Positions 1 through 29,071 of a DNA stretch of 64,000 nt are shown in pieces. Location of the stretch: the NCBI RefSeq assembly GCF_006345805.1, contig NC_043016.1:23374001-23438000 (forward strand). The letters run 5' to 3'. Under the pieces are notes generated by a model that made no database searches, had not been told where the DNA came from, and was given only the letters and a program-made list of their open reading frames with translations. The DNA is from Octopus sinensis (taxonomy: Eukaryota). How positions within the stretch are numbered: position 1 is the stretch's first letter; each line of letters opens with the position of its first letter. The position numbers and the translations under genes are program-made.

Positions 1-1757
1 AGGAGTTGGGGAATATACAAGCATAGTTCATGAAGAAGAGATGTAGTTTGCTTCATTGAGGTAGGGTGTGTGAATTAATGCTACAAGTGGGTGGAATACA
101 CAGTGCTTTAAGAATTCAGTCTTCTCAAGAATTTCCAGCCATCCTAATCCATGGTCATCTCCTCCATGAGGCTCAACATCTTGAGATCAGCTCTTACTAC
201 TTCATTCCATGTGTTTCTGGATCTCCCTCTTCCACATGTACCATCCACTATAAGCAATCAAACTTCTTAATACAGCTGTCTTCATTCATATGCATCACAT
301 GTCCAAACCATCATAGTTTTCTTTCTCTTGCATGCTGCATCTGATTCCTCTTATGCCCCACTTTTCTCTCAGCGCATTTGCACTTTGTTTCACATGCACA
401 CTAATGTTGCATATCCATCACAGCATACGAGCTTCATTCCTCTCCATTCTTTGCATGTCCTCTGCATTCAGAGCCCAAGTCTCACTACCATAGAGCATGG
501 CCATTCATACACAAGCATCATACAATCAGCCTTTTGAGAGAAGCCTTTTGTAGTCATCAGAGGAAATAGTACTCTGAATATTCTCTATCCTATTCTAGCA
601 ACAGTACTAGCAGAACATCCTCTTCCACTGCTACAACCTCAAGGGAACCTCCAAGAATCTAATTCTTGTGCATCCCTTGTGCTTATTATTCCTACATATC
701 AGCCACACAGAAAGATGACTTTCTCTCTTAACCTATCTGCAATTTTACTGCATCTCCAATGTGTCCATAGCTTGCACTGGGTGCAGCAAACGGAATTTCT
801 TCCAACACCTTTCCTACATATTGAGCAAAGTCATTTACTTGATGGAAAAAGTCTTACTACTTTCTTGCTAACAACAACTTTGGTCTTCACTAGATTAACT
901 TTCAGGTTTTGCTTCCATACCTGGAATTCCTCTACAAATTCTGCTATATGAGCAAGATCATCAGCATATAGTAGTTACCTATTTTAAATTCCTATGTTAC
1001 AACCAGGAGGACTATGATGAATAAGAGACTAAAAAATGAGTCTGGGTGAACTCCTATTTGTATGCTAAATTTGTCACTATACTCTCACCCTACTGACAGC
1101 ACCTCTATACATAGATTGTACAGTACTAACAAACCACTCATCTACTTCTAACTTCCTTAGAGACCACCAGGTAACAGAGTGAGGGACTCTGTCAAAAGCT
1201 TTCTCCAGGTATGATGGTTTACTTTTGGCTAGATAGTTTTCCTGCAGCTGTTTCACTGAGAAGATGGCATCTGTAGTGTTCTTCCCTAGCACAAAGCCAA
1301 ATTGCATTTCATCTAGTTTAATTCTATTCCTAATCAACTCTCTCAATAACTTTCATGACCTGTCCAACAGTTTGATACTTCTATAACTGTTTCTATCAAA
1401 GGCATCACCTTTACCCTTGTAGCAGCTATTATACCAATCATTATGGATAACCTGATTAACTATACTAGCGACTTAGCTGTATCCTACTCCACTAGATGTC
1501 TTAAGTGATTCAGCAGTAATTCCTGATGATCCAGGAACTTTCCTTATCTTCAGATCCTTAATTGCTTTATCTATCATACATCTGTCAACTGTGATGGCTG
1601 GTCTCACAGTTGGATCCATATTAGGAAGACTCTCCTTCTCCCATTCATACTCCACATTTAGCAATCTTTCACAGTGGCACTTCCATTCATCCATCAAGAA
1701 ATGCAAGTTATTATACTTGAAATTTATCACTGAGGCCACAAAGTACAACCTTTTCAA
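1..1757 (-). mobile_element. Decayed RTE-clade non-LTR retrotransposon (linker, RT and C-terminal region)
   Basis: Minus-strand ORF pieces read WKCHCERLLNVEYEWEKESLPNMDPTVRPAITVDRCMIDKAIKDLK..PGSSGITAE and MQFGFVLGKNTTDAIF..KQLQENYLAKSKP..LEKAFDRVPH, which are RTE RT motifs; many frameshifts and stops. Confidence 0.9.
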
Positions 1758-3148
1758 TTAATTTGCATGTAAACAAACTATGGATAATTGGTTGATAATT
1801 AGTCAAAGTGTCAGGGCAAAGCCTCGTCTTTTTGTAATAATAACAATACTGATGGCATCTTCCAACCAATCGCCGAAACCAATTTTAAAATTATAATTAT
1901 CACTATCAATAAGAAGCTTCTTTTTACTTTTTACTGCTTCCTAATGTAAACTACATAATAAATTTTATTGATTTCTGTCAAACTTAAACCAACATGGAAA
2001 AATGAATGTTAAACATTAAATGAATGTTAAACTAATGCTGAAAAATAATTGATTTATAATATAAAAATTAATATATAAAAAAGAATGTCAAACATTTCAT
2101 GCTAAATATAATCATGGCTTTGAATAATTTTGTGACACAGTTCTGTAAATATGCTGTTACAGCAACACTGTAATTCACAGTAATTACAGCAAGTGGTGTT
2201 TGAATTTATGATTAAAGATGGCTTCTTCTATTTTATTAATATTTTTTTTTTTCTTGAGAAAAACAAAAGAGACAATATTTAATATCCGATCATCAATAGA
2301 GCTGGATTGATTTATACATGGAATTCTAGTGGAAATATATCAATGATTCATTGGTTTTCAAGAATGTAATGTAACCAAGATTACTTAGAAAGCAACAATT
2401 CTATTTAGTAGATAAATACCATTCTCTCCTCTGAGATGGAGTAATTGATTTGATAAGTGTGTCAAATATCAATTGGCAAACTCTCGTCCAATCAATCACA
2501 TATTCTATCAATGAAGACATGAGCCGATTCCAATTAAAACACCATTAAAGTAGGACATAAACGAGGTGAAGTCAAAGATTGTATATATTTAAATGTTGTT
2601 CAATCAAGGTGAAGTTGATATATGTCAGGTGTATCTGATATCAACAGTGGTTAGGTTAATAAATTGAAAGAATATGGAAGTCTGGATGGTTTGTTCATCA
2701 TCCCTGTAGTAATATGTGGGGTTAATAGTGGTTGATAGAATATTATTAATGAAGAAGGGACAAAGAGTACTGAAGATAAACAGATGATCGGTGTATGTCA
2801 GAATTGACAGAGCAAAGCATTATTAGAGCACTATTGATGTTGAGTAGCATAAAATACAGTTTGTGTATGGAAGAATTAGAATTAGATAAGCACTCTAAGT
2901 ATAGTGTATTAGATGGTTGAGAGTGGTGATGTTTCTCAAGTGCAATATTTTCTTTATATTCATTCAATCAGCAAAATATTACTGATAAGAATACAGCACA
3001 AGTAAATTCAAAGATCTATAATGACAATAATCTAGCAAACCCCAATAAATATGACTGCTATGTATGTTACTGACACTGACCGGTTAAAAGACAGTGAGTT
3101 TGAACTCAGTGTTTCAAGGATCAGATTAACCAAATAAAAAATGATATC

Positions 3149-3340
3149 TTAACCCTTTAGCATTTAAACCAGCCATATCAGGCCCAAATATTCTGCCTGT
3201 TTTATGCTCAAACTAACCAGATCTGGACTTTCACACCTACCCTGCAATGTCATTCTAGAAATATACATTCAGATCATCGAAATCTTGAAGCTATAAGATA
3301 AAGCAGGATTAATTCAAAACAATGTGAATAAATAAATAAA
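3149..3340 (+). mobile_element. Left end of a piggyBac-like non-autonomous element, truncated by the adjacent LINE
   Basis: Begins TTAA|CCCTTTAGCATT, the TTAA target plus CCC-type terminus of piggyBac-like MITEs; the matching right end is not visible. Confidence 0.45.
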
Positions 3341-3344
3341 TAAA

Positions 3345-4495
3345 TATGGTTGTGTAATGTCAGTGTTCATATCCGACACAGTGTAAGTGCCTTGAGAGAA
3401 AAGCTGGACCTAAGAAGCATCGGATGTGGTGTGCAAGAGAGACGTCTACGCTGGTATGGACACGTAAGAATGGATGAAGATAGTTATGTGAAAAAGTGCC
3501 ACACACTAGCGGTTGAGGGAACCTGTGGAAGAGGTAGACCCAGGAAAACCTGGGACGAGGTGGTGAAGCATGACCTTCGTTCTTTAGGTCTCACCGAGGA
3601 AATGACCAGAGACTGAGACCTTTGGAAGTATGCTGTGCATGAGTAGACCCGGCAGGACAAGTGAGGCCATAACCCGTGGCCTCTACCTGGGACGTAGTCA
3701 GTCCACCTGTGCATACCTTCCTTCTTGGGACACATAACTCTACTTGTGAAGACCACCTGTTGAGGCAAGTGAAAATCAAAATTGAAATCGATCAGCATCA
3801 ATGGAATTTGTAATTGTGATACCAGTGCCAGTGGCACGTAAGAGAACCTATTTCTTAATTACCCACAAGGGGCTAAACACAGAGAGGACAAACAAGGACA
3901 GACATAGGTATTAAGTTGATTACATCGACCCCAGTGCGTAACTGGTACTTAATTTATCGACCCCGAAAGGATGAAAGGCAAAGTCGACCTCGGCGGAATT
4001 TGAACTCACAACGTAACGGCAGACGAAATACCGCTAAGCATTTCGCCCGGCGTGCTAACGTTTCTGTAAGAGAACCATCCGAATGTGGCCGTAGCCAGCG
4101 CCGAGTGCCGGTGGCATGTAAGAGAACCATCTGAACGTGGCCGTAGCCAGTGCCACATCGACTGGCCTCCGTGCCGGTGGCACGTAACAAACACCATCCG
4201 ATCATGGCCATTGCCAGCCTCGCCTGGCCTCCGTACCAGTGGCACATAAAAAGCACCATCTGAGGGTGGCCATTTGCTAGCCTCGTCTGGCACCTGTGTC
4301 GGTGGCAAGTAAAAAGCACCCACTACACTCATGGAGTGGTTGGCGTTAGGAAGGGCATCCAGCTGTAGAAACACTACCAGATCTGACTGGCCTGGTGCAG
4401 CCTTCGGGCTTCCCAGACCCCAGTTGAACCGTCCAACCCATGCTAGCATGGAAAGCGGACGTTAAACGATGATGATGATGATAATGATGATGATA
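3345..4495 (+). mobile_element. RTE LINE 3' end (ORF C-terminus, 3'UTR with ~40-bp internal repeats, (GAT)n tail)
   Basis: ORF 3350-3616 reads RRLRWYGHVRMDEDS.VKKC..L.VEG..GRGRPRKTWDEVVKHDL; ends aaacgatgatgatgat; close to the uninterrupted copy at 47400-48290. Confidence 0.9.
3849..4066 (-). mobile_element. tRNA-derived SINE (family B, Deu/Nin-like central motif) nested in the RTE 3'UTR
   Basis: Flanked by the direct repeat gtaagagaacc (3838-3848 and 4066-4076); minus strand carries B-box-like GAGTTCAAATTCC and GCCTTTCATCCTTTCGGGGTCGATAAATTAAGTACCAG. Confidence 0.9.
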
Positions 4496-5196
4496 GACAG
4501 AGTGAACTGAATGCTAACGGTTTAAAATGGCTAGTATAGAATCATTGTGGCAACTCCAACAATTAGGGTGACAATAATAATTTACATTGAGGGTGTCAGT
4601 ACTGTAAAAAGCACTGGTGATGGTTCCAAGTAAATAGCAACCAGTAACTCTGTAAAGTGGTTGGCATTAGTAATGATGATGATGATGACTGATGATAATC
4701 CCAGAATACAACTGATATATATTTTATTAACCTGGAAGATTAAACGTCAAAACCCACCTTAAAAGAATTCTATTTACGAAAGTAAATATTGTAAAGTTTT
4801 CTTTTTAACTTGGATCCACAATTCCTTGATAGAGTTATAAGGAGCACTGCCTGTGGTGTATCTTGGGCGTTTTTACATTGGGGAGCCCATTCCTCTCCTT
4901 CCCTGACTACAAATGATTTCTTCCAGAAAGTAAGAGAGAGAGCAAGATGGACAGAAGAAAAAGAGTGACGAAAAGAGAAGATCTGACATCAATGCAGGAC
5001 TGGATTTTTTCTATCAACTTCAAGAAAAAAGAAAAAAATGAAATTGAAATCAGTTAAATTTGAACTTTGAACACAGATGCAGAATGATTATCACAAAAGT
5101 AATCTGATTTTTTTTTGACAACTCCATCAGTTGTCCACCTGAAGAATCTACTTTCTGGGAAATGAGACACAGAGTTGAGGACTTTTATGATTCCAC

Positions 5197-5204
5197 TTAG
5201 ATAC
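5197..5204 (-). CDS. Candidate terminal coding exon (G-I-stop)
   Basis: Strong acceptor attttgctttttacag| at 5205; G+GT ATC TAA. An alternative acceptor exists at 5362. Confidence 0.45.
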
Positions 5205-5951
5205 CTGTAAAAAGCAAAATGTTGAAAAACATGGTTTGTGTATAAACTAACCTTATGTATGAATCTGACAGTTCAATTAACATCTTGATCTATAGACTTC
5301 TGTATGACATTTCAATAGCACAGATTAATGGGTAAAGTTGTCAAAAGCTGAGAGAATGAACCTGTTTAAAGCAAAGTTGACAACAAAACTCTAAAACTTA
5401 CTGCATTCTGTTTTTGTTATTGTTTACAATAACATACTCACCATTGTATATAAACGTTTGTGCTGCTTTCCCGTAGTCCCACTGAGACCATTCCAAACAC
5501 CTGTTGGATAAAATCTTAGATTAATTCACAATAAAAAAAAAATAAAACAAATTCAACAAGAAAAAGCGATTTAGCATTGTCACCAAGTCATTGATGTACA
5601 AGGAATCATACATGCATAACTGACCAACAGATACAGTGAAATATCAGTGATCAGACCATAGATATACACCACGGCAACTGAATTCTCACATGTACAATGA
5701 ATTAGAGTATTAGAGACCAAGTTTTAGATGTACATTAAATGAATTTGCTGTTTAATGATATATCTAATATTACAAAATAATAATACAGAACTTGATATAA
5801 TTGTACAAATAAATATTTTAGTGGTTCAATGACACTACCAAAAGAGAATTTATATTTCAATGAAGTATTATTCTTCTAATTCTGTTCATTAACAAATTAA
5901 ATATACCACATTGTTTCTATAGTAATTTTTTTTTCACTTGTCAGCCTAATG

Positions 5952-5986
<35 letters not shown>

Positions 5987-6434
5987 GTCTTAGTCTTTCC
6001 AAGTCTGTCTAGACTAGAAGATAGCTATTACTAAGTGAGGTCATTGTGTTTAATGCTAAGTTTAATACCTGAGGGTAAAAGATGAGATTGAAAAATGTCA
6101 TAGAGAAAAAAAGAATAAAAGACAGGAAATCGAAAACTCAGAGACAAAATACTTGTCTCAATTAAAATTTTTAAAAATTTCTTTTATATTTTTTTACTGG
6201 TTTCAATAAATATATTGAGGTACTGCCTTCAAACATTTAGCTAGTCATATTAACTCAAGTACTATTTCAGTCTCGTACTTATTTCATTGATCTCTTTGTT
6301 GAACAGCTAAGTTATTGGACATCAGAAAAACAATAAACACTGTAGAAATACATTAATAACACAGACAGTCACACCGGCACATGCAAATATATTGTACATA
6401 TGCATGTGTGTGTGTGTGCATGCGTGTGTGTGTG

Positions 6435-6473
<39 letters not shown>

Positions 6474-9400
6474 TGTGTGTGTTGTGTGTGTGTGGTGTGT
6501 GTGTGTGTGTGTGTGTGCATGTGCATGTGTAGGACATCTGAATAATTTCCATTTATTGAATTCTAAAATCTCCACTTAACAATATAGTGCTCACCAAGAT
6601 TACAGCAGAAAACACTGTTCAGTAAAACAGATTGATCCCAGGGTTTTTTTTTTTTTATCCTGGTACTTACTCTATAGGTCACTTTTGCCAAACCACTAAG
6701 TTACTGAGGTGTAAACAAACCAACACTGCTTGCCAACTGGAGGTGGAGGACAAACACACATATATACGGCAAGCTTCTTTCAGTTTCCATCTACCAAATC
6801 CACTCATAAGGCTTTGGTTGCCCTAAGGCTATAGTAAAAGACACTTGCCCAAGGTGCCATGCAGTGGGACTGAACCCAGAACCATGTTGCTGAGAAGCAA
6901 ACTTCATAGCACACAACTACGACAGTGCATGTGTGTATGCGTGTGTGTGACGTGTATAGTGGGAGTGTACATATAAGTGTGGTACAGGTAAGTACTGAAT
7001 TAGTGTTCAGACTGATCAGATTCTTCTATCTTAACTACTTAAACAGGCTAAAATGTCTATTTAGTCCATCAGAACAAGAGTAATTCTTTTATATGAGATG
7101 TGTACAGCTGTTTCAATCAATCAGTGACTAGTCAATTATAATGCATACTATGCAAACAAGAATATATAGTGGAGCAATAATTATACATAACAAATAAGCA
7201 AAAAGAAATTAACAACTTACATAAAGAATGATACTTAAATATCTTCAAGCTGCAACTGTCACATGTTCTTGTTAGAAGGAACAATAGTTCCACCAAGAAA
7301 TTATTCATGCATCATGCAAGTTGGCAAAAATGTTTACACTTATTTTGCTGAGTATAATTACCAGCTTTTTATAGGTATATATGCCTGTTTGCATAATAAC
7401 ATCAACCAGTCACCAAATCTTTGAAACAGATGTATGAGTCTATCTTCATCTTATAATGTCCCATAAGTATATGTAACATTGTATATAAATAAATTACTAA
7501 TTTCTTGTCCATTTTCGGTCTCATTACATATATATATATATATATATATACATACACTGTGTCCCACGCTATTAGGCAAATCAACCTTCTCTCAATAAAT
7601 AAATGTATATTCATTCAAAGCCAGTTGTTTTCTCACACCTATCTGCACACATTCTGTTAAAATAAATCAGATCTGTGTAAATGCCAACAAATGGCAGCCA
7701 TTTTTGTGATTGGGCAACATTTTCACCATCACCAATTGTTAGGCAAGTATAATAAAAATAATTGTGTTAAGATGAACATTTAATTCAACAGTAAAAGTTT
7801 AACAAGAAAACTACTCATAAAGGACTTCATAGTAAACATAATAATACGTTCGAATGTAAATAATCATGAGGTTATGATGTCATACAGCTCCTAATGTTTG
7901 ATGTATGATCCTCCACATGTAATAACCTTCCTTATGCACCGATCCACTGGATTTGTCAAGGTGATATCCTCTTATGTCATGCTTTGAACAGCATCTACAC
8001 TAATGTCCCAGAAGGCAACTTTACTTGAAAACTGCCTTCCATCTTGATAAACACGCCTCTTCAGGACACTCCACAGGCTTTTGACCAGGTTTAAGTTAAG
8101 GGAACAAGGTGGCCACTCCATCAAATGACCTCCAGAGAAGCCTATTTCCTTAGAATTCTTCGCTGCATGAGATAGGGCATTATCTTACATGTAGGCCAGT
8201 TTTATCTTGAATGAAAGTTTTTGTTTTTTCAACCATGGTTGGAAATTATCCTTTAAGAAGATAACATATGTTTTTGATGTCATCTTAATGCCATTGGAAC
8301 TTTCCACGGCTTGACCATCATACCACCAACGATGCCAGCCCAAAATATGACCTCACCTCCCCATTGTTGGCATCTCAAACAATGAGGGCAGTCCCTGCTG
8401 ATTGATACCCAACCTTTACTCAAGCCATATGTAGCCCATCAAAGGTAGCACAGCATTCATCAGTGAACCAAACTGTTGAAAAAATTAATCTTCATGTATT
8501 CTTCTGCCCACTGCAGTCTCTTCTGATTAGGAACAGCCTTCATAGGGGACCTTGTACCAGGTTCAATATTCCTGGCTACTTGCTTCAAGAGGCAACACTT
8601 GGTAATTTTCGATACATCTTCCTTGCCACAACAACTGAAGACTTCTCTACTTGTCAGATACATGACAAAGTATGATTCAAAGCAACCCTCGATTTACCCT
8701 AATCTGCCCTTGACCAGACAGAATTAGGGGACTTCACAAATTTCTTCACTCTTCGGTGATCTTTTCCCAGTATTTTTGATATTTCTATGGTTGATTTCCC
8801 TTTTCCAAGCTCTGATACAATGGTAGACTTCTCATTCAAGGTAAGATCACATTTCTGACCCTTAATGATACTTAAATTGGGCACCTGCCTAATTATTTGA
8901 GATAGCAGAAATGTTGCTGCTATACGAGAATGGCCAGTTTGTTTTCATCTGTGCAGATCCGATTTATTTTAACAGAATGTACACAGATAGGTGTTGCCAA
9001 CAGTCAGAAGGAAAACAACTGGTTTTGAATGAATATACATTTATTGAGAGAAGGTTGATTTGCCTAATAAATTGGAAAACAGTGTACATGTACATGTATG
9101 TGTGTATATATGTGTGCACATATATATATACTTATATATACACATACATATATATGTACATATATGTATATTTATATCTAAATATGTACATACACATACA
9201 CACACACACACACATATATATATATAGGTATGTTGATGCAAGCAGGAAAAATAGAATTCATATGAATATATTCTTTTATTCTGCTATATGTTTCAGCCTT
9301 GAAGCTGTAGCCATGCTGGGGCACCACCACTGTATATTTTCATTAATATTTAGCAGAAGTAACAGAGTAACTCAAGGGCCAAGAATTTTGTGCAGTGCTT

Positions 9401-12400
9401 ACAATGTAGCAGTAAGCAACAGGAAACAATCTGTGGTCAGACATCATTACTCAGATGCAACCATTTTTATTTCACTTGCTTTGCTATAGAAGTATTCTAT
9501 TGGGTCCACTACTTTACAAATGACAGCATGCTATTTGTACCCCAGATACTTTCCAAAAATGTTATAACTGTACGACATAAATCAATTATCTCAACCATTA
9601 AAAGTTTTTGGGTTTTTCTGTCTTTTTTTTTCTTTTTGGTTAAATTATTCAAAATGTCAGTCAAACCAAGAATTTTTGACAATAAAAATTTAGTTATTAA
9701 AATGTCTATAATTTTTTTGCTTTTGCTGGTCTTAAATGTAAGTCACCAAAAAGGGTGATCTTATATCAATATCAGTTCATACTAAACTTTCCTAATACAT
9801 TATTTTATAAGTAGAGAAATACACCCCCAAGCCTTAGTTGCATCATGTCATCAGTTTAATGTTAACTTGTGAAATATCAATATATCTAACACCACTAATA
9901 ACATGATTGTTAAAATGGGGTAAAGTTTTCATTTAATGTTACAATAAATTTCAACTCTAATTAATTGATAAGTTAGATCAAAACAGTCTTACCATTTGCT
10001 AAACTCAAACGGGTAGTTTGTGAAAGTTGCAAACTGTTCGACCATCGTTCTGCGGAAAGCTGCCTCAAATTCAGGATCAGGGGGAAAAGCAGAAAATTTT
10101 CGTTGATATCTTTTGGTTTTTCGTCTCATAGAAGTTTCCTTAAGTGAAGAGTCTGACAAATGAGGAATTGGTTTTCTTGGAAATTTGCTAGTAAAGGATT
10201 CATATCCATTTGTGATAGGTGGAGGAAAATTCACAGCTTGATGGTGACTAATATTATTCATGTCTAAATATGGAATTGCTCTCTGGATAATTGGTCTTTT
10301 AAGTGCTGCTGCTGCTGCTGCAGTTGGTGGTGGTGGAGGTGGTTGTGGATATAAAAATCCTTGGCCATTATCAAAATACATATCTCCTCCATAATAATGG
10401 GAATCCTTCATGAAACCATAAGTTGGTACTGGTATGTTAGCCATGTCTATTGGTACATATGTTTTACCGGTTGGCATCATGCTGTCCATCTCAGGTAAAT
10501 AGAAGCTGTGATTAGATTCTTTAATAGTTATTTCGTCCGTTAACGACGCTGTGAAAGGCAGAGAAGGTACTAAACTGAAGTCAGCTGGTGCATTGTTGCA
10601 CATGTTTGGAGTTGCACAACTCACTGATTGTGTATGCGATTGTCTGTAATTGGAACTGCTGTGTGGACTGCCGGATTTTTTTTGAACATCAGTCAGAGAA
10701 GAAGGTGCAGTCTTTTCCGATTTTGATGGATATTCATTCAAAGATTTGTGCTTTGATGATTTTGTAGGGTGACATGGTACATCAAAGAACTGATTCTCTT
10801 TTGGCTTTGAAGAACTCTCAACAGGTATTATACACAAAGTATATGTCACATTTAAGATTGGAATTTCATTTAAAAAGTTTTTAAAAAATTGCATTGTTGA
10901 AGACTTCAGATAAAGCAGCTTGGCTGGAGAAGTATTTAAAAATAAGTCTGATTTTAGAAAATTAGTTTTATTTTTTATGCCAAACAAAAGTTCTTTCAAA
11001 CTGACAGAATTTCCCCACAAGTCTCCAAAATGATTTCCTTTAACTACTGACATTGTTTGTGAAGTTTCTTTGTTTGCAACATAATTATGCAATGGCTTTG
11101 GATCAAATAGTCTCAACTTAGAGGTTTTATCACAAATAGAAAAGTTACAGAAAATTTTAAAAAACTCTTTATATTTATCTGAAGAGGTAGGATAATTTGG
11201 GCCAGTTTTTCCTACATGTAGACATTTTTTAAATTGTTTTCTTATATGTAACCCATCACAATGAAAAACAGTTACATGATAATCGATAGTAAATACTCTA
11301 GAAATGTTATACGTTTTAATCAAAGAAAAAGTTAGGAATTTTATTTTAGTTTGTTCTACTGATGAGAAGTATTTACAGATTATACTCAACATTGATAATC
11401 TACTTATTTTATCATGGCCAATACACAGAGATGGGTTCAATTGTGTATCAGCACATAATTGTTCATTTCTTTCTAAATGTAAATTGAAAAATGGAAAATC
11501 TAACCACAGCTGAAATCTAATTAATCTGAAACCCATACCAAATCTTACACACCTCATTGCACATAAAAATTGAGTATTATATCTGCAGTTGGGTAAAGAA
11601 CAGTATAGGTCTCTTGAGGAATCATAATCAGTGATAGTATGTATTGTAATCAGAGAAGTGAATAAATTTAACAAACTCTGACTTAAAATTCTTAAATGAT
11701 TAGCAAATGATAAATATTTTTCATAACTTAAAGAATGTAAAATATCTGAAGGCAACATCTCATGTTTGTTGACTATGTCTGATTGATGAACACTTTTCAA
11801 AAGATACCTTGTGGCCATAATCATTAACATATTCGCATTAAATTTACAGAATTTCATGATTTTAATTCTCATATTTAAAAATACATGTTTTATCCCATAT
11901 ATCCCCCACTCTAAACTCTGTGTAAATTCTTCAACACAACTTTGTTCTTTTACTCCTGATTTAATGTATAATTTTGAATAAAAAAAGAATCCTTGTTGGA
12001 AATGTTTATAATTAACAAAAGTAGAATAAAAATTCTCAACAGAAGCCTTTGTGTTTAAAAGAATGTTTGTTGTAAGAAATGCATGTTTGAATGGATCAAA
12101 AGGAAATGCAACTGATGATTTCCATATAATCATCAGCACAGCTGCCTTTTCAAATAATTTAATTTGCAAATAAACATGTGAACAATCAAACAGATTCTTA
12201 CAAAGATAAATCTTACTGAATGATTTATAAGCTTTGATATGAAGACTATTTCTAAAACAGAACTTTCTGTGTTTAATAGCTACTGGTGACAACCTTAGTT
12301 TTATAGCTTTGAATATATTTGCTATCAGCAAATATATTTTGGCTTTGGCACCATCAGACACTGCCAAAACAGCAATAAAATCTATTAGTTTGGTTAACTT

Positions 12401-13858
12401 ATAACAAAATAGCTGTCTGAAAAAGGAAAGATATCTAGCTTTTATATCCATTATTAATGCTGGTGGGGCCAATATATTACTTGGAATTAAAGGCTTAAAG
12501 TGCTCCTTTGGTACCTTTGATGATGAATGGTTTCCTTCAGAGAACCTATCACATAAATTTCCCACACCATTATAATGAGTACACACGTCAAATGAAGAGA
12601 CATTATCTTTTAAATATCGCAACATTTGATGTATCTTACAAATGCCATTACCAACAAATATATGTGCAGCCATCTTGGGCCTAGGAAAATCTTCAAAAGC
12701 ACCAAAAGCTTCTGGCAAGATTATCACTAATAGGTAATTCAATTCATTCACATTAAGACTGGTGATTATAATTAGATCTGTCATTAAAAAAAACATTTTC
12801 CAAGAGGAATTACCCAATTTCAAATTTAATTTTTGAAGCTGGATCGTTTTCATAACTAAAGATTGCAAATACTCGATGTAAAATCCATCCCAAAATTCAA
12901 TTACATTTTCCTGTGCTTTTAAAAGGAAAGGCACATGAAATTCTAAATTGATCAATAATATGATAATTACTTCCAAAGTTGGTTGACAGAAATCTAATAT
13001 TATTTCAAAAATATCATTGACAAACACTGCAAAACAAGCAATGCAGTGTTTTGTGCTGTTTAATTCATTGATAGGTACACTGTTCCTATATTTGTGGCAC
13101 AGATTCAATTCATCAATATTAATTGGTAAAGAGTCAATTATTTTAGAGTATTTCTGTGCTAAACATTGAAAACATTCCAGGTCAGGCTGATTACATATCT
13201 CGTCTTTATTACCAACTAAAAATTTAGTATCGTTCTCAGGAAATCCTTGTGAGTTAAATGTTTTAAACATTAGATTTCTTTTGGTCTTTAGCCATATTTT
13301 TAATCTGAAATAATTTAGGTGCTTTGCAGTGAGAATTCTCCTGAAGTGCAACTTTTTGTGGGAGACATTTAGTTTTGGGTGCAAAACATATACAGAGCCA
13401 GAAGTACACAAAACAGTGAAGCCCACAGAATAGAAAACAATGTCTGGTGTAGAAACTTTGTCTTCTTGGAATATCTGACAAAATGATTTGCTAATCACTT
13501 CAAACTGGTAACCATTGCCCGTTTTCATGTTCCTAGCTGCATATTCTGTGCAGCCATTTCTTTTGGGTATATAGATTTTATTGCTACATTTTCTAACCAG
13601 ATCATTTTTCAAACTGTAATGCACAGGACTGTATATACTTATGTGTCTGACTTGCTTTTTAGGGAAGTAAATTGTATCAGATCTAAAAGGCTTCCTAATG
13701 GCATGCTTTCGAAGTATATTGACACACATCCTACAATTGAGGCATTTACTATGCACAGCAAGTTTTGATAGCTTCAAAGGTAAATGTTTCACTTCTGGTA
13801 TTCTTCCAGTTGAATGCTTCAGTTGTTTTAAATCTATAGCATCTTGGCTTTCAAACAT
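5197..13858 (-). CDS. Spliced gene, join of complement(13858..9993, 5500..5442, 5204..5197), ~1310 aa; divergent NXF-family-like protein with a C-terminal TAP-C (UBA) domain
   Basis: 1289-codon open frame; donor TG|GTAAGA, acceptor ttttatccaacag|G, donor G|GTGAGT, acceptor ttttgctttttacag|GT; phases compatible (2, then 1). The spliced peptide aligns ungapped with the human NXF1 TAP-C sequence as recalled (13/34 identities, including CL...WDY...AQ.F). The last exon is uncertain. Confidence 0.8.
5442..5500 (-). CDS. 59-nt exon encoding the second half of the TAP-C domain (CLEWSQWDYGKAAQTFIYN)
   Basis: Canonical acceptor (ccaacag|) and donor (|gtgagt); phase-2 entry matches the giant exon's TG| end; carries the WDY motif. 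Confidence 0.88.
6400..6530. repeat. (GT)n microsatellite, compound
   Basis: Direct reading of the sequence. Confidence 0.95.
6640..6925 (-). mobile_element. tRNA-derived SINE (family A), degraded
   Basis: Reverse complement of the family A head (GGTTCAGTCCCACTGCATGGCACCTTGGGCAAGTGTC) and body seen intact at 51913-52366. Confidence 0.85.
7555..9084 (-). mobile_element. Full-length Tc1-family DNA transposon with ~200-bp IR/DR-type TIRs; transposase pseudogene
   Basis: TA|CACTG...CAGTG|TA ends; TIRs at ~7555-7750 and ~8880-9084 are reverse complements with TATTAGGCA-like direct repeats at both ends; minus-strand pieces GQKCDLTLNEKSTIV..GKSTIEISKILG (HTH), KRLQWAEEYMK, and decayed DE..TFDG and GG.V.FWAGI motifs. 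Confidence 0.93.
9993..13858 (-). CDS. Giant coding exon (3866 nt coding) of the NXF-like gene
   Basis: No stop over 1289 codons in AT-rich DNA; A at -3 of the ATG; in-frame stop 11 codons upstream; ends exactly at a GTAAGA donor; C-terminal Ser/Pro-rich low-complexity region (PQPPPPPPTAAAAAA). Confidence 0.93.
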
Positions 13859-14206
13859 AATTTTGTTGAAAATAGGAGTATAAAATTCTGGTTAGGAGAA
13901 ACTCTTGTTTTCTTCACACAGCTGCTTTTTGCTATAATAATTTCATTGGATTCACATCGAGCTTTCTGATAAATGAGAGTTGAAAAACAGAAAGGAAACA
14001 TGTATATCACTGTCTAATATGAATAAAAATATTTCTCATATACATATATGTATCATATATATATATTATGTATATTTATACACACGTGTATTTATACATA
14101 CGTATATTTGTATATTTATACATGCATATATACACATACATATATATAAATCTATATTTATACAAAAACATATACACATATATAAATGTATATTTATGCA
14201 TATGCA

Positions 14207-14238
<32 letters not shown>

Positions 14239-14344
14239 CATACATATACACATTTCTATATGTACATTATATATATATTCTCTGGTGTCTGGGGAGAGTC
14301 ATTTTCTTTTTAAAGAATCTTGCAAACCAAATCCAAAAACGAAA

Positions 14345-15471
14345 TATATATATTAATAAAAGTGAAATTTTGTCTGTCTGTCTGGGACCCCTGTATTTCA
14401 GTCTATATTTGCTCTACATAGACATATACTTTTTTGGAATCAGGATGAATCCAGGATTGAAAATCTGCCCTTCATTTGGTTCTTGAACATCCAGTATTAG
14501 GATCTGATTTAAAAACATTTGGGTTGCTATTCCTAGCAGGTAAAGTGACCATGAGAGGTTCAGGGCCATAGTATTACTGAGATAGGTGAACAAGAGTTAC
14601 CTTCCTTAGCTTTACTAAGGATTTTAGTGGTTTTTTAATCTTTTCAGTCATCAGAATATGACCATGCTGGGGCACCATCTCAAAGAATTTTAATTGAACA
14701 AATTGATACCAGTTGTTTCCTTTTTATGCCTGGTACATTTTTATTGGCCTCTTTAACTGAACTGCTAAGTTATGTGAACGTAAACACACCAACACCAGTT
14801 ATCAAGTGATATTGGGGGACACAGACACAAAGCCACACACACTTTTTTTCTATAATAATAACTACTGAGTTTCTTAACTCTTTGGATCCTCTTGGAATGC
14901 CTTCTCACAAACTGACATTGAAGAAAGGAGTTCCAATCATTTTTGAGAAATCTGGATCTCCGAAAGCTGTGCAATTGAACAAGACTGATAGTCAGGCAAA
15001 TGCATCCACATCTTTTGGAGGTAACAATCCCCACTGGACAAGGAAAGGGAGAAAATGTGCTTATTTTAAGAATTCCACTGATTCCAGCTGACATGCCCTT
15101 TAAATTCAAAAGATTTCAATTTCTAGTAAGAATTAGTTTTGCAATGTCAATTAACAAGAGTAAAGAACAATCACTCAAATTTTTTGGACTTCACCTCATG
15201 CAGCAGTGCTTTTCCCATGGTCAGCTCCTCTGTTGGTTGTTCCAGAGTTGAAAATGGCACCAATCTCTTCATACTCACACCAAATGGTAAAACTAAGAAT
15301 ATTGTTTATCTTACTGCTTTACAGTAATCTCCAAATGTCACAGTGATACAAAATTCTCCAAATGTGATACTCCGTGATATAAATCTGAGATGGTAGGATA
15401 CCAATAAATGCTTTATTATTATTATGTATCTCCTTAGTTTTGGGCTGGAGGCCCAATTAGTCCTCCGCTAG
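14345..15471 (+). mobile_element. Internally deleted Helitron with PIF1-helicase C-terminal remnant
   Basis: 14870-15327 encodes LDPLGMPSHKLTLKKGVP..RIPLIP.DMPFKFKRFQF.VRISFAMSINKS..QSL..G..L...CFSHGQL..CSRV..KTKNIVY (frameshifted); 3' GGGC-tggag-GCCC hairpin then CTAG at 15468-15471; Helitron-like 5' AT-rich/TGTC leader near 14345. Confidence 0.8.
14640..14845 (-). mobile_element. Family A SINE 3' half inserted in the Helitron
   Basis: Matches the reverse complement of the family A tail (cagtcat..ccatgctggggcacc..gaactgctaagttat..acacagacac). Confidence 0.75.
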
Positions 15472-15549
15472 CTTAAAAGACTGCACACTGTGTTTTTTAA
15501 GCTAGTATATTATATATATATATATATAATATATATATATATATATAAA

Positions 15550-15847
15550 TCTTTTATCTTTTACATGTTTCAGTCATTAGACTACAGCCATGCTGGGGCA
15601 CCACCATGAATTTTAGATGAATGAATTGACCCCAGTACTTATATTTTAAGCCTGGTACTTATTCTATCGGTCTTTTTTGCTGAACTGCTAAGTTACAGAG
15701 ACACAAACATACCAACACTGGTTGTCAAGTAATGATGGGACAAACACAGACACACTCATACATACATATATATATATAACCAGGTGGTGCTATTAAGTTG
15801 GACATGGCCTGGGCCAATAATGGCCGAAACCTATCAAAGTATCAAAG

Positions 15848-15897
<50 letters not shown>

Positions 15898-16030
15898 GTA
15901 ACAGGCTTTTCTCAGTTTCCATTTACCAAATCCATTCACAAGGCTTTTGCCCAAAGTGCCATGCAGTGGGATTGAACCTGAAATTATGTGGTTGGGAAAT
16001 AAGTTACTTACCACACAACCACTCCTGCAC
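15550..16030 (-). mobile_element. Family A SINE with expanded internal (TA)n
   Basis: Head and tail both present; internal microsatellite at 15850-15896. Confidence 0.85.
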
Positions 16031-16519
16031 CTTATGTATGTATGTGTGGGTATGTGTGTGTGTGTATGTATGGATATTTATATATATATGTGTGAGCGTA
16101 AATATGTATATGTATACATATATAGAGTGTAAGTGTGTTTGAGGATACTTAGTTATCAATATATTACTCTGCCCAAACCAATTAAAAAGTTATTTATTTA
16201 TTTCAGATTCGTGCCCTGGCAGATAAATGCTAATACAAGAAAGGTAAAGACATCCAGTCATTGTTGCCATATGAGCAGAACACATCAATTTGGAAACTAC
16301 CAACTTTCTAAATGTTGCAACATTACTTGTACAAAATGTTCAGATGGAACTGGAAGTCTGATGTGTATGTTTCAACTCTATTAAAGGGAACAAAACATTC
16401 TAAATGTTTGGATACCATAAGTACACTGCAGTTCATCCAGCAGGTTCAAATATTACAAATATTACAGAAAATCAATGAAGATCGTCGCCAAAGAACTCCA
16501 GGTCTTAACAACTACCTCT

Positions 16520-17770
16520 AGCAGTTAACAACTAGATGAATGGTTAGTAAGAGCTGTGCAAGCCATATACAGAGATGCTATCAGTAAGGTGAACATTGGC
16601 AATGAGTACAGTAAAGAATTCAGAGTAGGGGTAGGGGTCCGCCAAGGATCAGTCTTCAGCCCCCGCTTATTCATCATAGTCCTCCAGGCAATAACAGAGG
16701 AATTCAAGACAGGATGCCCCCTCTATGTTGATGACCTCGCTCTAATTGCTGAGTCACTATCAGAACTAGAGAAGTTTCAGGTGTGAAAGCAAAAATTAGA
16801 ATCGAAAGGCCTTAGAGTCAACCAAGCTAAAACCAAAGTCTTAGTAAGTAGGAAGGCAGACAAACTACAAATCTCTTCAGGTAGATGGCCCCGCTCAAAC
16901 TGTAGAAAAGGTGTAGATAGAAACTCCATAAGATGTACCCAGTGTAAGCTATGGACACATAAGAGGTGCAGCAATATCAAAGGGAGGCTAACTTGGAAGA
17001 TAGTTTTTGTATGTGACAAATGCTCAGGTACTATAAACACTGAAAATGTGCAGAGGACAGCTTCTGTCACATTCCATGGAGAAAAACTAGTAGTAGTTGA
17101 TAGCTTCAGTTAATTAGGGGACCAAGTCAGTAGCAGGGGTGGATGCTCTGAAAGTGTAGCTGCTAGAATGAAAATAGCCTGGGCAAAGTTCAGAGAGCTC
17201 CTACCTCTGCTGGTGACAAAGGGCCTCTTGCTTAGAGTAAAAGGTAGACTGTATGATGCACATGTGCAAACTGCCATGCTTCACAGCAGTGAAACATGAG
17301 CCATGACTGCTGAAGACATGCATAGCCTTGAAAGAAATGAAGCTAGCATGATACACTGGATGTGTAATGTCAGTGTGCACACACGACAGAGTGTAAGCGC
17401 CATGAGAAAAATGTTAGACATAAGACGCATCGGATGTGATGTGCAAGAGAAACATTTGCATTGGTATGGTCATGTACTGCAGATGGATGAGGAGAGCTGT
17501 GTGAAGAAGTGCCACTCCCAAACAGTGGAAGGAATCTGGGGTAGAGGGAGACACAAGAAGACATGGGATTAGGTGGTCAAGCATGACCTTCGAATGCTGG
17601 GCCTCACAGAGACAATGACAAAAGAATGAAACCTCTGAAGATATGCTGTGACATTGAAGACCCGGCAAATAAAGTGAGTCCACAGCTGTAACTTACACCA
17701 GTGTTGCATAACCAGCCCACTCAAAAGTACCTTGGATCGTAGGGGACATGCCGTGCTTGAGGAGACCTAT
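16520..17770 (+). mobile_element. RTE LINE 3' portion (RT domains to C-terminus), pseudogenised
   Basis: YRDAISKVNIGNEYSKEFRVGVGVRQGSVFSPRLF...YVDDLALIAES, plus C-terminal HLHWYGHV and KKTWD motifs. Confidence 0.92.
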
Positions 17771-17779
17771 CGAGTCTGG

Positions 17780-18010
17780 CACCAAGCAGTATTAGGGCTG
17801 CAGCCTGGCCAACGGGGCTCTGGTGAAAATTCCAAGAGGCGTCTGATCGGCAACTGGTAGCTTCGAAGTCGTTCTGTCTCTGCACCTGTGGAGACTCCAC
17901 GGTAAACAGGGTGTCCGGTCACTCGGGATATACATGCAGGATGTCGGGGACCGCTTGTGAATTCAATATTCCCACAAAACTTCTTCCATGAATCCTGCTA
18001 TGTCAGGACC
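17780..18010 (-). mobile_element. Possible fragment of a different LINE (I/R1/LOA-like linker)
   Basis: GC-rich island; a minus frame reads SWKKFCGNIE, resembling the SW..FC..IE linker motif between endonuclease and RT; single motif only. Confidence 0.3.
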
Positions 18011-18184
18011 AGAGAAGAAGCCAGCTCAACCCATCCTGAGTGAATGCCGTCACAAGTACAAGTACAATGGAGTGGGTATATTAACATATGCAGTATTATA
18101 GATCTATCATTGCTGTAATAAATCTATAATTTTAATACACTTTAATAAACATACATATATGTATAAATTTTATATATAAATATA

Positions 18185-18216
<32 letters not shown>

Positions 18217-21200
18217 TAATATTCAAGCTGTAGAAGGAGAGATAGCTCCTAGCCATGGAGATTGTAACAGGTTAGATTTCTTTAAGTTGATGCCTATTGT
18301 GTATGAATAATCAAAGGAGTTCCAAAGGGTTGCAAGTTGTCAAGCAGAAACATCTGACCAAGTCTTTAGTATAATATCAGGAAAGGTGTGACAAAGTAGA
18401 ATTGATGAGAAGAAGCACATTACATATATTAGTGGTACCAACTACCTACTTTAGGCACAACAGGAACTTTTGCATTAAAGCAGTAGACGAAACAGATCTT
18501 ATACTGGTAGGTTAATAATGTTTACATAATATATTAAAGAAGAATTTACTATAATGGCTTCTTGTTATTTTCTTCAGGTTCAGCAGATGCAGACACATTA
18601 ATTAAAGAGCTCTGACTACTTATCACACTAAGCCATATTTATTCTACACTACTATTAAACTGATACACACAAACTGACTGAGACAAGTGGAAGAAACTAA
18701 AAGACAGTGCTGGCAATAGGATCCAAATTACTGATCTACAAGCTGGTAGTCCAAAATAAAATTAGAGGAAACCCCTGTGACATGAATCCTACCCCCAGCA
18801 TCCCTATCATCCTTTCACAGACCGAATAACAGAACCAAAATTCCTCACAAATCATGGATTTAGTTATTGTTCATATAGACTTCTTGCTCATGCATGTAGC
18901 TTGTCAGTGCTGATCTTGGTTGTTCATCTCACTCCAATGCAAGCACCCTCCTGGCGCACACTGACTGTGAGTTCAAACTTCACTGGAATCCATTCTACTT
19001 TTTATATTAAGGCTAACAGAATCATTATTGCTTCAGAGAAAATGTTTAGAGGCATTTATTTTGGCTCTTTACATTCTGAGTTCAAAATCCTACTGAGATC
19101 AACTTTGCCTTTTACCCTTTCAAAGTGGTGCCCCAGCATGGCCACAGTCAAATGACTGAAACAAGTAGAAGGTAAAAGCTATGATTAACATGTTGTTCAA
19201 ACCACTATCATCATTCTGTCTGATATTGAAGACCTATCACCATCAGATAAGATCCAAAGTTGCTATTTTCTATCACACAAGGAAGATGGTGATAAGGAGT
19301 GGAATTAGAAACAAGAACACTCAAAGAACAAGAGTTGATGCTGCAAGGCATCCTCTTTGACATTCTTAATTCAACTAACCCACCTTTCTAGATTGGTACA
19401 GTAATTATCAGTTCTCCCTACCCCCAGCTCCATCCAAAAGGTAATGTTGACCTCAGCTGAATTTGAACTAAGAGCCCAAAAGTACACCAAAACAAAAACA
19501 AGGTATTATTCTATTATATATTCTCAGGACTGTGAATCCACCACCTCATTTTTTTTTCCTTTCTCTCCCTCCCTGCATCTTAATGTGATGCCTAATTGGT
19601 CTGAGTTCAAATCTTGCCAGAGGTTTGTTTTGTGGCCTTGGAGTTAATGAAATAAGTAGTGCCAATTATACACCGAAATTGATTCAATCAATTAAAATTT
19701 TCCTACAAATTATATTGGCACAGTGCCTATTGAAAAGGAATTAACAGTGAAGAACAACAAAAAGAATGAAAAAGAGAGAGAGAAAAAAAAACAGATAAAA
19801 ATATAGAAGCAAGTGATGGTGTATGCATGATCAATTATTATTATTATTATTATTTTAACATATCAACCAAATAAAAGTGTAGGTGGGCCAAAAATAGATC
19901 TAAGGTGAACTTGCTGTTTTAATTAGCTGCTCAAGAGAACAAACAGAAAAGCTAATTACAAACAGTAGAGGTAAGTTGGCAATGGATCAGTGGGTTCACT
20001 GCAGCATGGAACTTGTTACAAAGAATGCTGCTAGCAGTTAGTGGGTTAAGAAACCAAGAATTCTTAACGAGGATCTAAAACAATTAGAGAAAACAACTGC
20101 ACAAAAAAGTAAAGATCTGAAAAATTCGAAAAGGGAACTTGATTTTTAAGATTGAAACAATGCTCTCTTTTATTTCAATTAACACTTTTTACCATTTTAT
20201 CATTTTATATCCATGTTGCCATGTTAGCATGATTGCAATTACTTCTACACATTTGAACATTTGCATTACAACCACTCAGCCGTAAAGTAGAGCTACATAT
20301 AAAAATATAAATACCTAATAAATCCTGCAAGAGTTTTAATGACTGATTCTTAGCTTCAGTTTCATGGCATTAAGAGACTGAGAGTTAAAAATTACCCCTG
20401 GATAGGACATTAGTTTACTACAAATAATGTTACTGAAACCAACAAAGGACATTTTATGTAGTCACTTGGCTTCCTAGAAATAGCAGCCAAGTCTCTACCT
20501 AATTATATTCTCATATAGAAAGAGATGGGATGACAGCAGTTTGAACACCTTTGATCACATATCTGCTCAAACAGGATTGACTTGGAGCTAAACAACAAGT
20601 AATATTAATTAATAGATGATTTGTTACCTATTCCTGACAGGTGAAACTATGTACAATAAATGAAAACTGCATGTCAGTCAGACAAACAATGACATTTAGA
20701 GTTAAAACATGGTAGAGTGCCAGACTAAATTCTTTGCAATATTTAGTTTTCTTCCTTCTGTTTTGCAATTGAATCCTTTATTTTGAGATGATTCTGTCTT
20801 CTATTATTCCAGGGTCAATATAATAAATATTAGTAATAAGCAGTGTTCAATTTTAATCAAATATATCCTTGTCTTATAAAAACTGGTTCCATGCCAAAGG
20901 CAGTAATTCATGCTGCTGACTAGCATTGTGGTGTGGGTAAAGTTATGAATAAATTAGCCAGTTTCACCATGAAACGGGTCGAGAAAAAGTTGGACCGAAA
21001 TGGTGAATGCATACATCACCTACTGCTATATATTACCACCTGGCCACTATTCCTTGTCCAGCATTTTGTTTGATTATACCTATAGATTCTTATAGAAAAG
21101 AATGCATCCTTCTGAGCAAGCAGCATATCAGCTGTCAACAAGTTTTGAATGGGAGAACTGATGAATATTCAGATACGTACTGAGGTTATTCCCATCTACA

Positions 21201-22814
21201 CAGATCCCTCAATGGCAAGAAAGTGCAGTCACCCTTTGACAGGCAGGTTTTCCCTCAAATCATTTTCTTTGACGAAGCTTCAGTCCAAACTGCTTCTAGA
21301 GTGTTGTCAGGAAAATGAAGCCCTCTTCCGGATTAGTAATAAAGTCCGTAGAACTTCCACATTAGCATTCTATAGAGGACTAGCAGCATGGAAGAATGGC
21401 GATATTCTTCGATGAACTCCAAGCATCAATGAAACCCACCCAACAGGCTAATTATGAAGACTTTCAGTCTGAGACTCTGAATGACATCTCTAGCCTAGCA
21501 GTGCTACATGAGAGGCATTGATAGTTTAAGATAAACGTGCTTGTCTGGGGTACAGTAAAAATGATTGAACAATTCTGCACACAGTGATTTGGTGTCTGAC
21601 TTATGGCAGTATGTCAAACAGCTGTTGTAAAGTGTAGGACAGATCTAGTTATCAGCCAATTACAGCTTGGTGATCACCTTGTTTGACAATCACTCTGCTT
21701 GCATGTCCTTCCTGGCCAAAGGAAGTGGCTTGAAAGAACAGACAATTTTCCTTTGGTTATAGTAAAAGAACTTGTGTGGTTTACATGACCAAAAAGTTTG
21801 AGGACAGATGGCTTCATTTTTTTTACCAAGACATCACCTGGAGTGGAAGGCGAGAGCGAAGAGAGAGGTTCTGCACTCTAGCAAATTTCCTTGACAGATG
21901 ATGAGAGTATTGAGCAGAGTTTAAGTGAATGGTCCTATGCTCAACATATACCAAGAAGTCAAAGAACAACAACTGGGAGAAGGTACATACTATTGTTAGT
22001 TAAGGTAATCCTGAATCTATAGGGTTTCTCAACTGCCCCTAAACAGCAGTCTCTGCTTGGGAAATTACCACAGTTTACACACATCTATGTATAGCATTAT
22101 TTTTTCAACATTTCATTTCAATATAAACCTTGCAAACACACTTTCTCTATTGGCTCTGTAATGACAATCACCCTTGAAGTAACAGCTTTTCCACATGCAC
22201 ACAAAATTGCAAACCTTGCGAAAGAGTTATAATTATTATCATTTATTTATTTGCTCAGACAATAAGACATCTGACTGCAAGAGCTTAATTCTAGGGAACA
22301 ATATGTGCGCAAAAATGATTTAACTCGCAGACATTTAATGAAGCCACATTTAAACAAATCAAAGCCATTCAAGGGACATGGCATCTCATGGTAACAACAA
22401 AATCATCATCACAATGAAGTTTAATCACTTGCTAAATCTCTTGGTAAGTCATATTTAGTACAATGCAGTGCAGTATGTAATCTTATTTATCGATGTGACT
22501 AGAAGATACCATTATTTATCTGAAGTGACCCTCACTGCATACTAGCGGCACCCACTTATCTCTTCACCTAAAATCATAATACACAAGAAACAACCTAATT
22601 AATGCATTTATATGTGAAGACATTCATACAAAGATGAGGAATCGTTAAGCCCTAGACATTTTTTCCGTCTTCTCATCTCTTTCTCTCATAGAGCATAGGC
22701 TCAAAATATCAAAGACTTTTTCCATTCTTCCCGAGCATCAAACTAATATGCCTGCTTGTTGTTCCCTCATTTGTTTTCATATTTTGCTTTCTGTAAATTT
22801 GAACTATCTCTCTT

Positions 22815-23004
22815 TACTCTTATACTTGTTTCAGTCATTTGACTGTGGCCATGCTGGAGCATCACCTTTAGTTGAGCACATCAACCCCAGGACTTATTCT
22901 TTGTAAGCCTAGTACTTATTCTAACGCTAAGTTATGGGGACGTAAACACACAGCAACGGTTGTCAAGTGATGTTGGGGGTACAAACACAGAAACACAAAC
23001 ATAT

Positions 23005-23047
<43 letters not shown>

Positions 23048-23220
23048 TATATGACAGGCTTCTTTCAGTTTCCGTCTACTAAATCCACTCACAATGCTTT
23101 TGTCAGCCCGAGGCTATAGTAGAAGACACTTGCCCAAGGTGCCACGCAGTGGGATTGAACCTAGAACCATGTAGTTTGTAAGCAAGCTACTTACCACACA
23201 GCCACTCCTATGCCTACATT
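22815..23220 (-). mobile_element. Family A SINE, near full length
   Basis: Reverse complement of the 51913-52366 copy, including the A-box and B-box head. Confidence 0.9.
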
Positions 23221-23734
23221 TCAGAGAATATATATATGTTTATATATGTACCAAAACATGTGAATGTTTGCATTTGTATATACATGTATACATAGATATG
23301 ATGCTTTTACTAAATCTTCGCTTGTGCTCTTTTGTCTATGTTTTTATACCACACAACTGCCACAACAAACATGAACTACCTCCAACACCACCACGCAACT
23401 GAAACCATACACGCTGTCACTGATGTTTCACTAACAAATAATATTACAATATTGGCATCATTACAAAAAAAATATATTAAAATTTACATCAACCTCTACC
23501 ACTACCATAATTACCAAATCTACTAATACTACTACAGCTTTCATCAACAAACACTGTTGTTGCCACCAGAAATACTGCTGTCACCACCACCATCACCACA
23601 ACCATGACTACTACTCTAAACTATATGACACAGATAACACACCTGTATGACTTGGCTAAAATCTCACATTAAATTGATTGGCCAACTCTGATAATAAATT
23701 ATATATACATACATGCTTACACACACACACACAT

Positions 23735-23773
<39 letters not shown>

Positions 23774-23780
<7 letters not shown>

Positions 23781-26385: not shown

Positions 26386-26420
<35 letters not shown>
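23774..26420. repeat. Tandem duplication, 2 x ~1327 bp
   Basis: aatttattatcagagttggcc starts at 23781 and 25108; the copies appear to differ only by 1-nt indels and microsatellite length; each contains a family B SINE, a family A SINE and a short LINE tail. Confidence 0.95.
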
Positions 26421-26424
<4 letters not shown>

Positions 26425-27621: not shown

Positions 27622-27622
27622 T

Positions 27623-27653
<31 letters not shown>

Positions 27654-27699
27654 CACATACATATACACACACAAACATATATATATATACTATAGCTGC

Positions 27700-27880: not shown

Positions 27881-27912
<32 letters not shown>

Positions 27913-29045: not shown

Positions 29046-29071
29046 CAATTCCAGAACTCTACGCTATATGT

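Follow-up and report, generated by a model that had tools for sequence, protein, structure and literature searches.

Analysis of a 64,000-nucleotide stretch of the Octopus sinensis genome (contig NC_043016.1, positions 23,374,001 to 23,438,000 of the forward strand; hereafter, the window) identified a real, spliced, protein-coding gene, LOC118767288, on the reverse strand. The product of this gene is best read, with a probability that we put at roughly 0.7, as an octopod-restricted chimera, in both its anatomy and its evolutionary origin: a long orphan body would be followed, over the last 45 or so residues, by a three-helix TAP-C domain derived from an NXF gene. To our knowledge, TAP-C is almost always the last module of NXF export receptors. 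The domain had been proposed in a prediction made from the DNA letters without database searches (hereafter, the original prediction), which regarded the protein as a lineage-specific candidate member of the NXF family.

The gene comprises three coding exons, the positions of which are given in Table 1. In unspliced form, the open reading frame (ORF) at 9989..13858 (-) encodes 1289 amino acids (aa), with AAA TGG as its last sense codons and FEFSKW* as its C-terminal end. According to the original prediction, the stop of this ORF lies inside a GTAAGA splice donor and position 9993 is joined to a 59-nt exon at 5500-5442. Indeed, the TAA can be read directly within AAATG/GTAAGA, the coordinates and letters of the exon are correct, and the splice matches the O. 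sinensis protein XP_036367523.1. The 9993-to-5500 junction keeps the frame and gives the spliced reading ...MVEQFATFTNYPFEFSKWCLEWSQWDYGKAAQTFIYN, to which exon 1 contributes RRTMVEQFATFTNYPFEFSKW and exon 2 contributes CLEWSQWDYGKAAQTFIYN; exon 2 is bordered by a pyrimidine-rich acceptor (...ccaacag/) and by a donor (/gtgagt). Over 1308 aa, the spliced product matches XP_036367523.1 (1310 aa) at 100% identity, and the annotated coding sequence of that protein spans exactly window positions 13858 to 5197, the window being an exact part of chromosome record CM016878.1. A possible acceptor (...tttatcag/) at ~13961 hints at an exon of the 5' untranslated region upstream of the start codon.

Two orthologues were found, namely LOC106884196 of Octopus bimaculoides (96% identical) and Ahia01_000734800 of Argonauta hians (43% over the full length). 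The ORF of O. bimaculoides likewise terminates in FEFSKW*, and the acceptor and donor of its exon 2 are identical to those of O. sinensis; in A. hians, the donor (AAATG/gtaaga), the acceptor and the 59-nt exon all match as well. The domain had been described as hidden, a description that does not hold: the RefSeq models already splice the exon, and the O. bimaculoides entry A0A0L8I4U0 is already named 'TAP-C domain-containing protein' in UniProt. Public databases already contain the gene model and the label of the domain, and the practical value of the present finding is modest for that reason; a literature search found no paper naming this locus.

Profile, sequence and structure comparisons identify the C-terminus as a real NXF-type TAP-C/UBA domain. 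Indeed (i) the Pfam model TAP_C (PF03943) matches the spliced 51-aa peptide with E=3.1e-8 and 33.5 bits, above the curated gathering score of 21.3, in agreement with the domain originally proposed, and it matches the full-length orthologues with 26.6-27.4 bits over aa 1272-1305, (ii) a phmmer search against all PDB sequences returned only human TAP/NXF1 chains at E<0.01 (best E=4.7e-4; 1go5, 1oai), and TAP-C was the only match of a whole-family profile against PDB sequences, (iii) human NXF1 and the octopus domain share 13/34 ungapped identities when counted by hand, as had been stated in the original prediction, whose human NXF1 TAP-C sequence proved correct in alignments to PDB 1go5 and 1oai, and (iv) a hidden Markov model (HMM) built from the C-terminal 130 aa of NXF1 aligns with octopod aa 1269-1305, covering alpha1-alpha3 only, from RRTMVEQF onwards, and does not extend into the NTF2-like end or into alpha4. 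The Cys-Leu and Trp-Asp-Tyr positions of the NXF1 TAP-C are conserved, and the alignment with NXF1 shows no variation at the W and D of the alpha2-alpha3 loop. When the last 68 residues were modelled by AlphaFold2 from an alignment with vertebrate NXF1 TAP-C sequences, the model reached a mean predicted local distance difference test score (pLDDT) of 78, with 85-90 over the domain, and predicted three helices (aa 1262-1280, 1284-1293 and 1298-1308). In this model, obtained from an NXF1-dominated alignment, the helices form the compact three-helix bundle typical of UBA-like domains, and Foldseek ranked 1oai and 1go5 first, ahead of Mex67, Nxf2 and classical UBA domains.

Intron positions mark the exons encoding this domain as descendants of the 3' end of an NXF gene, acquired at the genomic level and not via a retrocopy. 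The comparison covers vertebrate NXF1 (alpaca and stingray), in which the TAP-C coding sequence is split into ...LEWSQ(AA/G or AA/A), CLQDN...THLK and AKGEIPEVAFMK, that is, by a phase-2 intron, a 61-nt exon and a phase-0 intron, with the last exon encoding helix alpha4. In each case the phase-2 intron lies in the codon preceding the conserved Cys (octopod TG/G, before TGT-Cys; alpaca AA/G; stingray AA/A), and the donor of the second octopod intron precedes the vertebrate phase-0 intron by 2 nt, so that the exons measure 59 and 61 nt, respectively. Taking the 38-residue homologous stretch as about 114 possible intron sites, the chance of an exact match in site and phase together with a second intron within 2 nt is estimated at roughly 4e-4; the TAP-C exons are considered NXF-derived because such a coincidence is improbable for independently gained introns. 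Predicted mammalian NXF1 isoforms skip the exon of TAP-C helix alpha1, using the very exon boundary that the octopod gene has kept.

The substitution pattern indicates that the TAP-C and the adjacent basic patch, MRRKTKRYQRK, are under very strong purifying selection, and that the body is maintained by selection and evolves fast. Over the last 53 codons (SAFPPDPEF...TFIYN), the differences between O. sinensis and Argonauta are 18 synonymous and 0 non-synonymous, and MRRKTKRYQRK sits 8 residues upstream of this fully conserved block. Exon 2 shows 8 synonymous and 0 non-synonymous differences from Argonauta, and this restriction to synonymous changes is direct evidence of its translation in this frame. 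Against O. bimaculoides, the ratio of non-synonymous to synonymous rates (dN/dS) along the ORF is lowest at the C-terminus (0/49 codons changed) and highest, at 0.8, in the middle; overall it is 0.56 (Fisher p=0.02), with 2.0% mismatch in exon 1 versus 6.5% in the intron. The ORF remains intact in Argonauta at 43% identity, the blocks conserved between the two being aa 1-80, 241-400 and 1201-1308. The dS of exon 1 (0.031) is about half of the intron mismatch of 6.5% between O. sinensis and O. bimaculoides, which suggests either that the nucleotide sequence of the exon is under additional constraint or that rates vary regionally.

The canonical TAP-C is a three-helix bundle with a short fourth helix (10.1101/609693), and the version encoded here is without helix alpha4. 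The Pfam TAP_C match ends at profile position 35 of 49. The residues past alpha3 are non-conserved: there are 2-5 of them in the Octopus isoforms, which end in NGI*, NDFS* or NEIEFF*, and 46 residues of unrelated sequence in the Argonauta model. The alpha4 motif GxIPxxAFxK was not found in the octopod protein, an alpha4-encoding exon of the IPxxAF type was found downstream neither in the window nor in 26 kb of the O. bimaculoides locus, and inspection by eye of the other reading frames of exon 3 found no IPxxAF relic. Because the Pfam match stops early, the tails differ and no alpha4 exon was found downstream, the conserved part of the protein ends with alpha3. The Gly-Ile-stop exon 3 is kept in both Octopus species and was not found in Argonauta, and the 3' end of the gene looks evolutionarily labile or partly mis-modelled. 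The 3' terminal exons vary by species and by isoform (positions 34990-35001 of the retrieved O. bimaculoides locus; 16729-29100 of that of Argonauta), and in one O. bimaculoides model an exon of 3 codons lies 16.5 kb downstream.

The ~1,240 residues that precede TAP-C, encoded by a single 3.9-kb exon, are on the strength of homology searches an octopod-restricted orphan body. A HMMER profile search with aa 1-1100 against 1.84 billion representative proteins found no homologue of the body outside octopods, which confirms that the gene is lineage-restricted, and a word-indexed search for relatives of the body returned only the O. bimaculoides and Argonauta orthologues. The sole extra match of the body profile, a translated tandem-repeat protein, was rejected as spurious. 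Pfam gave no further domain on the ORF (E<=10) or on three orthologues (E<=1), and neither Pfam nor hhalign, run between the octopod alignment and one of NXF1 from 15 species, detected RRM/Tap-RNA_bind (PF09162), LRR_NXF1-5 (PF24048) or the NTF2-like domain that pairs with NXT1/p15 (PF22602/PF02136); TAP-C was all that hhalign aligned. In tblastn searches with human NXF1, the query having been checked against PDB 6e5u, exon 2 was the sole match in both the window and the O. bimaculoides locus, and no LRR-like exon and no remnant of LRR or NTF2-like exons was found near the gene in either. The locus is clearly not the canonical NXF1 orthologue. No internal repeats were found in the protein. With regard to the idea of a transmembrane segment, the hydrophobic peaks at aa 272-313 and 362-380 contain acidic residues. 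An AlphaFold2 model of aa 1-1100, built from three sequences, was unusable (mean pLDDT 24.8).

As to what the chimera does, docking of its TAP-C on FG (phenylalanine-glycine) nucleoporins would be the most likely role, because the alpha2-alpha3 loop still carries its Trp-Asp; the proposal is a tentative one, at a little under even odds. The TAP-C, with its Trp-Asp loop kept, would give the large body one low-affinity docking site for FG-nucleoporins, the basic patch would act as a putative nuclear localisation signal, and the two together could bring the protein to or through nuclear pores. The NWD loop is reportedly needed for the binding of TAP to nucleoporins, and export is said to need two FG sites. 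A function as an autonomous mRNA export receptor is unlikely, because the octopod protein has no detected NTF2-like/NXT1 module, no detected RNA-binding unit and a single putative FG site; NXF1 itself requires both FG pockets (10.1101/609693).

Several points weigh against the chimera as described here and against its proposed function. (i) The putative FG-binding role is argued from sequence conservation. (ii) The loss of alpha4 may alter the surface of the domain, if Drosophila Nxf2, whose partner-binding face consists of alpha1, alpha3 and alpha4, is a guide. (iii) The NXF1-dominated alignment biases the structural model of the C-terminus towards that fold, and the model counts as supporting and not as independent evidence. 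(iv) The argument for exon descent uses the introns of vertebrate NXF1 only. (v) The low pLDDT of the body may leave room for a very diverged known fold.

The main rival to FG docking, which we regard as unlikely, is that the TAP-C has lost FG binding and instead holds an amphipathic helix, supplied by a partner or by the body of the protein itself. The UBA domain of Nxf2 does bind a helix of Panoramix in this way, within a complex of piRNA silencing (SFiNX/PICTS/Pandas) and with loss of FG binding (10.1101/609693; 10.1101/608273). The octopod domain is without alpha4 and nothing is conserved past alpha3, an absence that would leave a groove for another helix, and the orphan, fast-evolving body resembles many silencing co-factors. 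However, the W-D loop, through which NXF1 binds nucleoporins, is kept, and the proposal is a pure analogy.

Far less probable is an explanation along the lines of the original prediction, namely that the entire gene descends from an NXF paralogue and has diverged strongly, the RRM, LRR and NTF2-like domains having drifted past recognition and the upstream introns having been lost. Its TAP-C exons are NXF-derived, repurposed NXF paralogues are known, and the uninformative body model would allow a hidden fold. However, no other NXF domain was detected by Pfam, hhalign or a custom HMM, and canonical NXF proteins do carry these domains in the matches listed (among the best 120, all vertebrate, PF09162 is present in all and PF24048 in all but one). 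The body is, moreover, twice the length of NXF1 and lies in one exon, with only two 3' introns kept. Intron loss mediated by reverse transcripts usually takes 3' introns first; the kept 3' introns count against a diverged paralogue because such loss gives the opposite pattern. Sequence evidence thus favours a gene that carries a piece of NXF without being one: of the four defining domains, three were not found and the fourth is truncated. Of the proposed NXF-family membership, the descent of the TAP-C exons stands, by virtue of the intron match, and the RRM, LRR and NTF2-like domains and alpha4 are missing.

Marginally less probable still is a role of the domain in binding ubiquitin or a ubiquitin-like protein, outside nuclear transport. 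Ubiquitin binding has been reported for the yeast Mex67 UBA and for classical three-helix UBA domains; minus alpha4, the octopod domain amounts to a plain three-helix UBA, and Foldseek ranks the classical UBA domains of FAF1, p47, TDP2 and Dcn1 just under TAP. The sequence, however, matches TAP_C alone among Pfam models. Last, some features of the body would fit a gene-model artefact, pseudogene or non-coding transcript, in which the long ORF and the TAP-C exons would not form one functional protein: its amino-acid composition is AT-rich and 'random-like', AlphaFold2 gave no usable model of it and its dN/dS is fairly high. This is nevertheless the least credible alternative, given that 1289 stop-free codons would arise by chance with a probability of about 1e-41 at 35% GC (calculated from base composition), that the ORF, both splice sites and the junction frame are conserved in three species, that the last 53 codons show synonymous changes only, and that the exon is three times better conserved than the intron.

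If the chimera is accepted, it would represent a clean case of exon capture yielding a lineage-specific gene, in which the captured exons have been frozen by selection and an ancestral intron has been kept. If FG binding is retained, a single TAP-C without alpha4 could be usable as a portable nuclear-pore address tag; if a partner helix is bound instead, this would be a second, independent repurposing of an NXF UBA after that of Drosophila Nxf2. A more elaborate scenario, suggested by analogy and to be regarded as a long shot, is that a long orphan ORF, possibly of de novo origin or diverged beyond recognition, captured the TAP-C exons of an NXF paralogue and became a single-chain analogue of Panoramix-Nxf2, which might serve as a lineage-specific nuclear-pore or nascent-RNA adaptor for transposon or RNA control in a cephalopod genome rich in repeats.

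Table 1. Features of LOC118767288 in the window, listed in the direction of transcription
Feature	Position	Strand	Description
Coding exon 1	9993..13858	-	ATG at 13858 to donor AAATG/gt; aa 1-1289 and the first 2 nt of the codon that follows; 100% identical to XP_036367523.1
Conserved N-terminal region	13619..13858	-	aa 1-80, motif CLNCRMC; 70% identical to Argonauta
Most conserved part of the orphan body	12659..13138	-	aa 241-400, very hydrophobic, predicted helical; 57-75% identity to Argonauta versus 43% overall
Pro/Ser/Tyr-rich, poorly structured linker	10139..10801	-	About aa 1020-1240; from sequence, conservation profile and absence of predicted secondary structure (low-confidence model)
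Basic cluster MRRKTKRYQRK	10097..10129	-	aa 1244-1254; invariant between Octopus and Argonauta except Q/H
Exon-1 share of TAP-C	9993..10054	-	aa 1269-1289, RRTMVEQFATFTNYPFEFSKW; helix alpha1 and start of alpha2
5' splice donor GTAAGA	9987..9992	-	Holds the in-frame TAA (9991-9989) that closes the ORF when the intron is retained
Intron 1	5501..9992	-	4492 nt, phase 2; separates helix alpha1 and early alpha2 of TAP-C from the remainder of the domain
Coding exon 2	5442..5500	-	59 nt, encodes CLEWSQWDYGKAAQTFIYN, which covers the last part of alpha2, the WD loop and alpha3 of TAP-C
Intron 2	5205..5441	-	237 nt, phase 1
Coding part of terminal exon 3	5197..5204	-	Acceptor ...ttttacag/; (G)GT ATC TAA = Gly-Ile-stop; protein end ...IYNGI*

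Furthermore, several repeats were found in and around the gene and elsewhere in the window. In brief, these include: a (TG)58 microsatellite inside intron 1 (6405-6517); an (AT)n/(TA)n microsatellite ~180 nt ahead of the ATG (14038-14278); a GC-rich 62-bp tandem repeat (2.8 copies, 4146-4320) downstream of the stop of the gene, in a region of 35% GC, which overlaps ORFs at 3954-4449 (-) and is possibly a repeat element; a 301-bp tandem repeat (4.1 copies, 95% matches, 58114-59337) followed by 1.6 kb of (AT)n (59338-60919); and further TA/TACA microsatellites (61547-62397; 44049-45358). The other long ORFs of the window, which are open in several frames (e.g. 59701-60942 and 61496-62526), are explained by microsatellites and repeats and gave no Pfam matches, and Rfam gave no matches in window positions 1-20000.

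Among known systems, the closest to the octopod protein is NXF1/TAP (Mex67; PF03943; PDB 1GO5, 1OAI), with which it shares a homologous alpha1-alpha3, the position of the domain at the C-terminus and an identical phase-2 intron inside the domain, followed by an exon of 59 nt in octopods and 61 nt in NXF1. It differs from NXF1/TAP in having no detected RRM/Tap-RNA_bind, LRR or NTF2-like domain, one putative FG site and no alpha4 (GxIPxxAF), in its length (1310 aa versus about 620), in the one giant exon that encodes its body and in its occurrence in octopods only. The UBA of Drosophila Nxf2, as part of the Panoramix-Nxf2-Nxt1 complex (SFiNX/PICTS/Pandas), offers a second parallel, namely a TAP-C-type domain in a role other than bulk export, putatively so in octopods, beside a fast-evolving, lineage-restricted protein. 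However, Nxf2 retains the full NXF architecture and alpha4, whereas the octopod gene combines the orphan polypeptide and the UBA in one chain. Finally, Arabidopsis SDE5 is a plant protein of independent origin that was not found to be related in sequence to the octopod body; it is needed for trans-acting small interfering RNA (tasiRNA) and transgene silencing, reportedly shows a very weak similarity to the TAP C-terminus (12% identity) and offers an earlier example of a TAP-C-like region carried by a non-NXF scaffold (PMC5574965).

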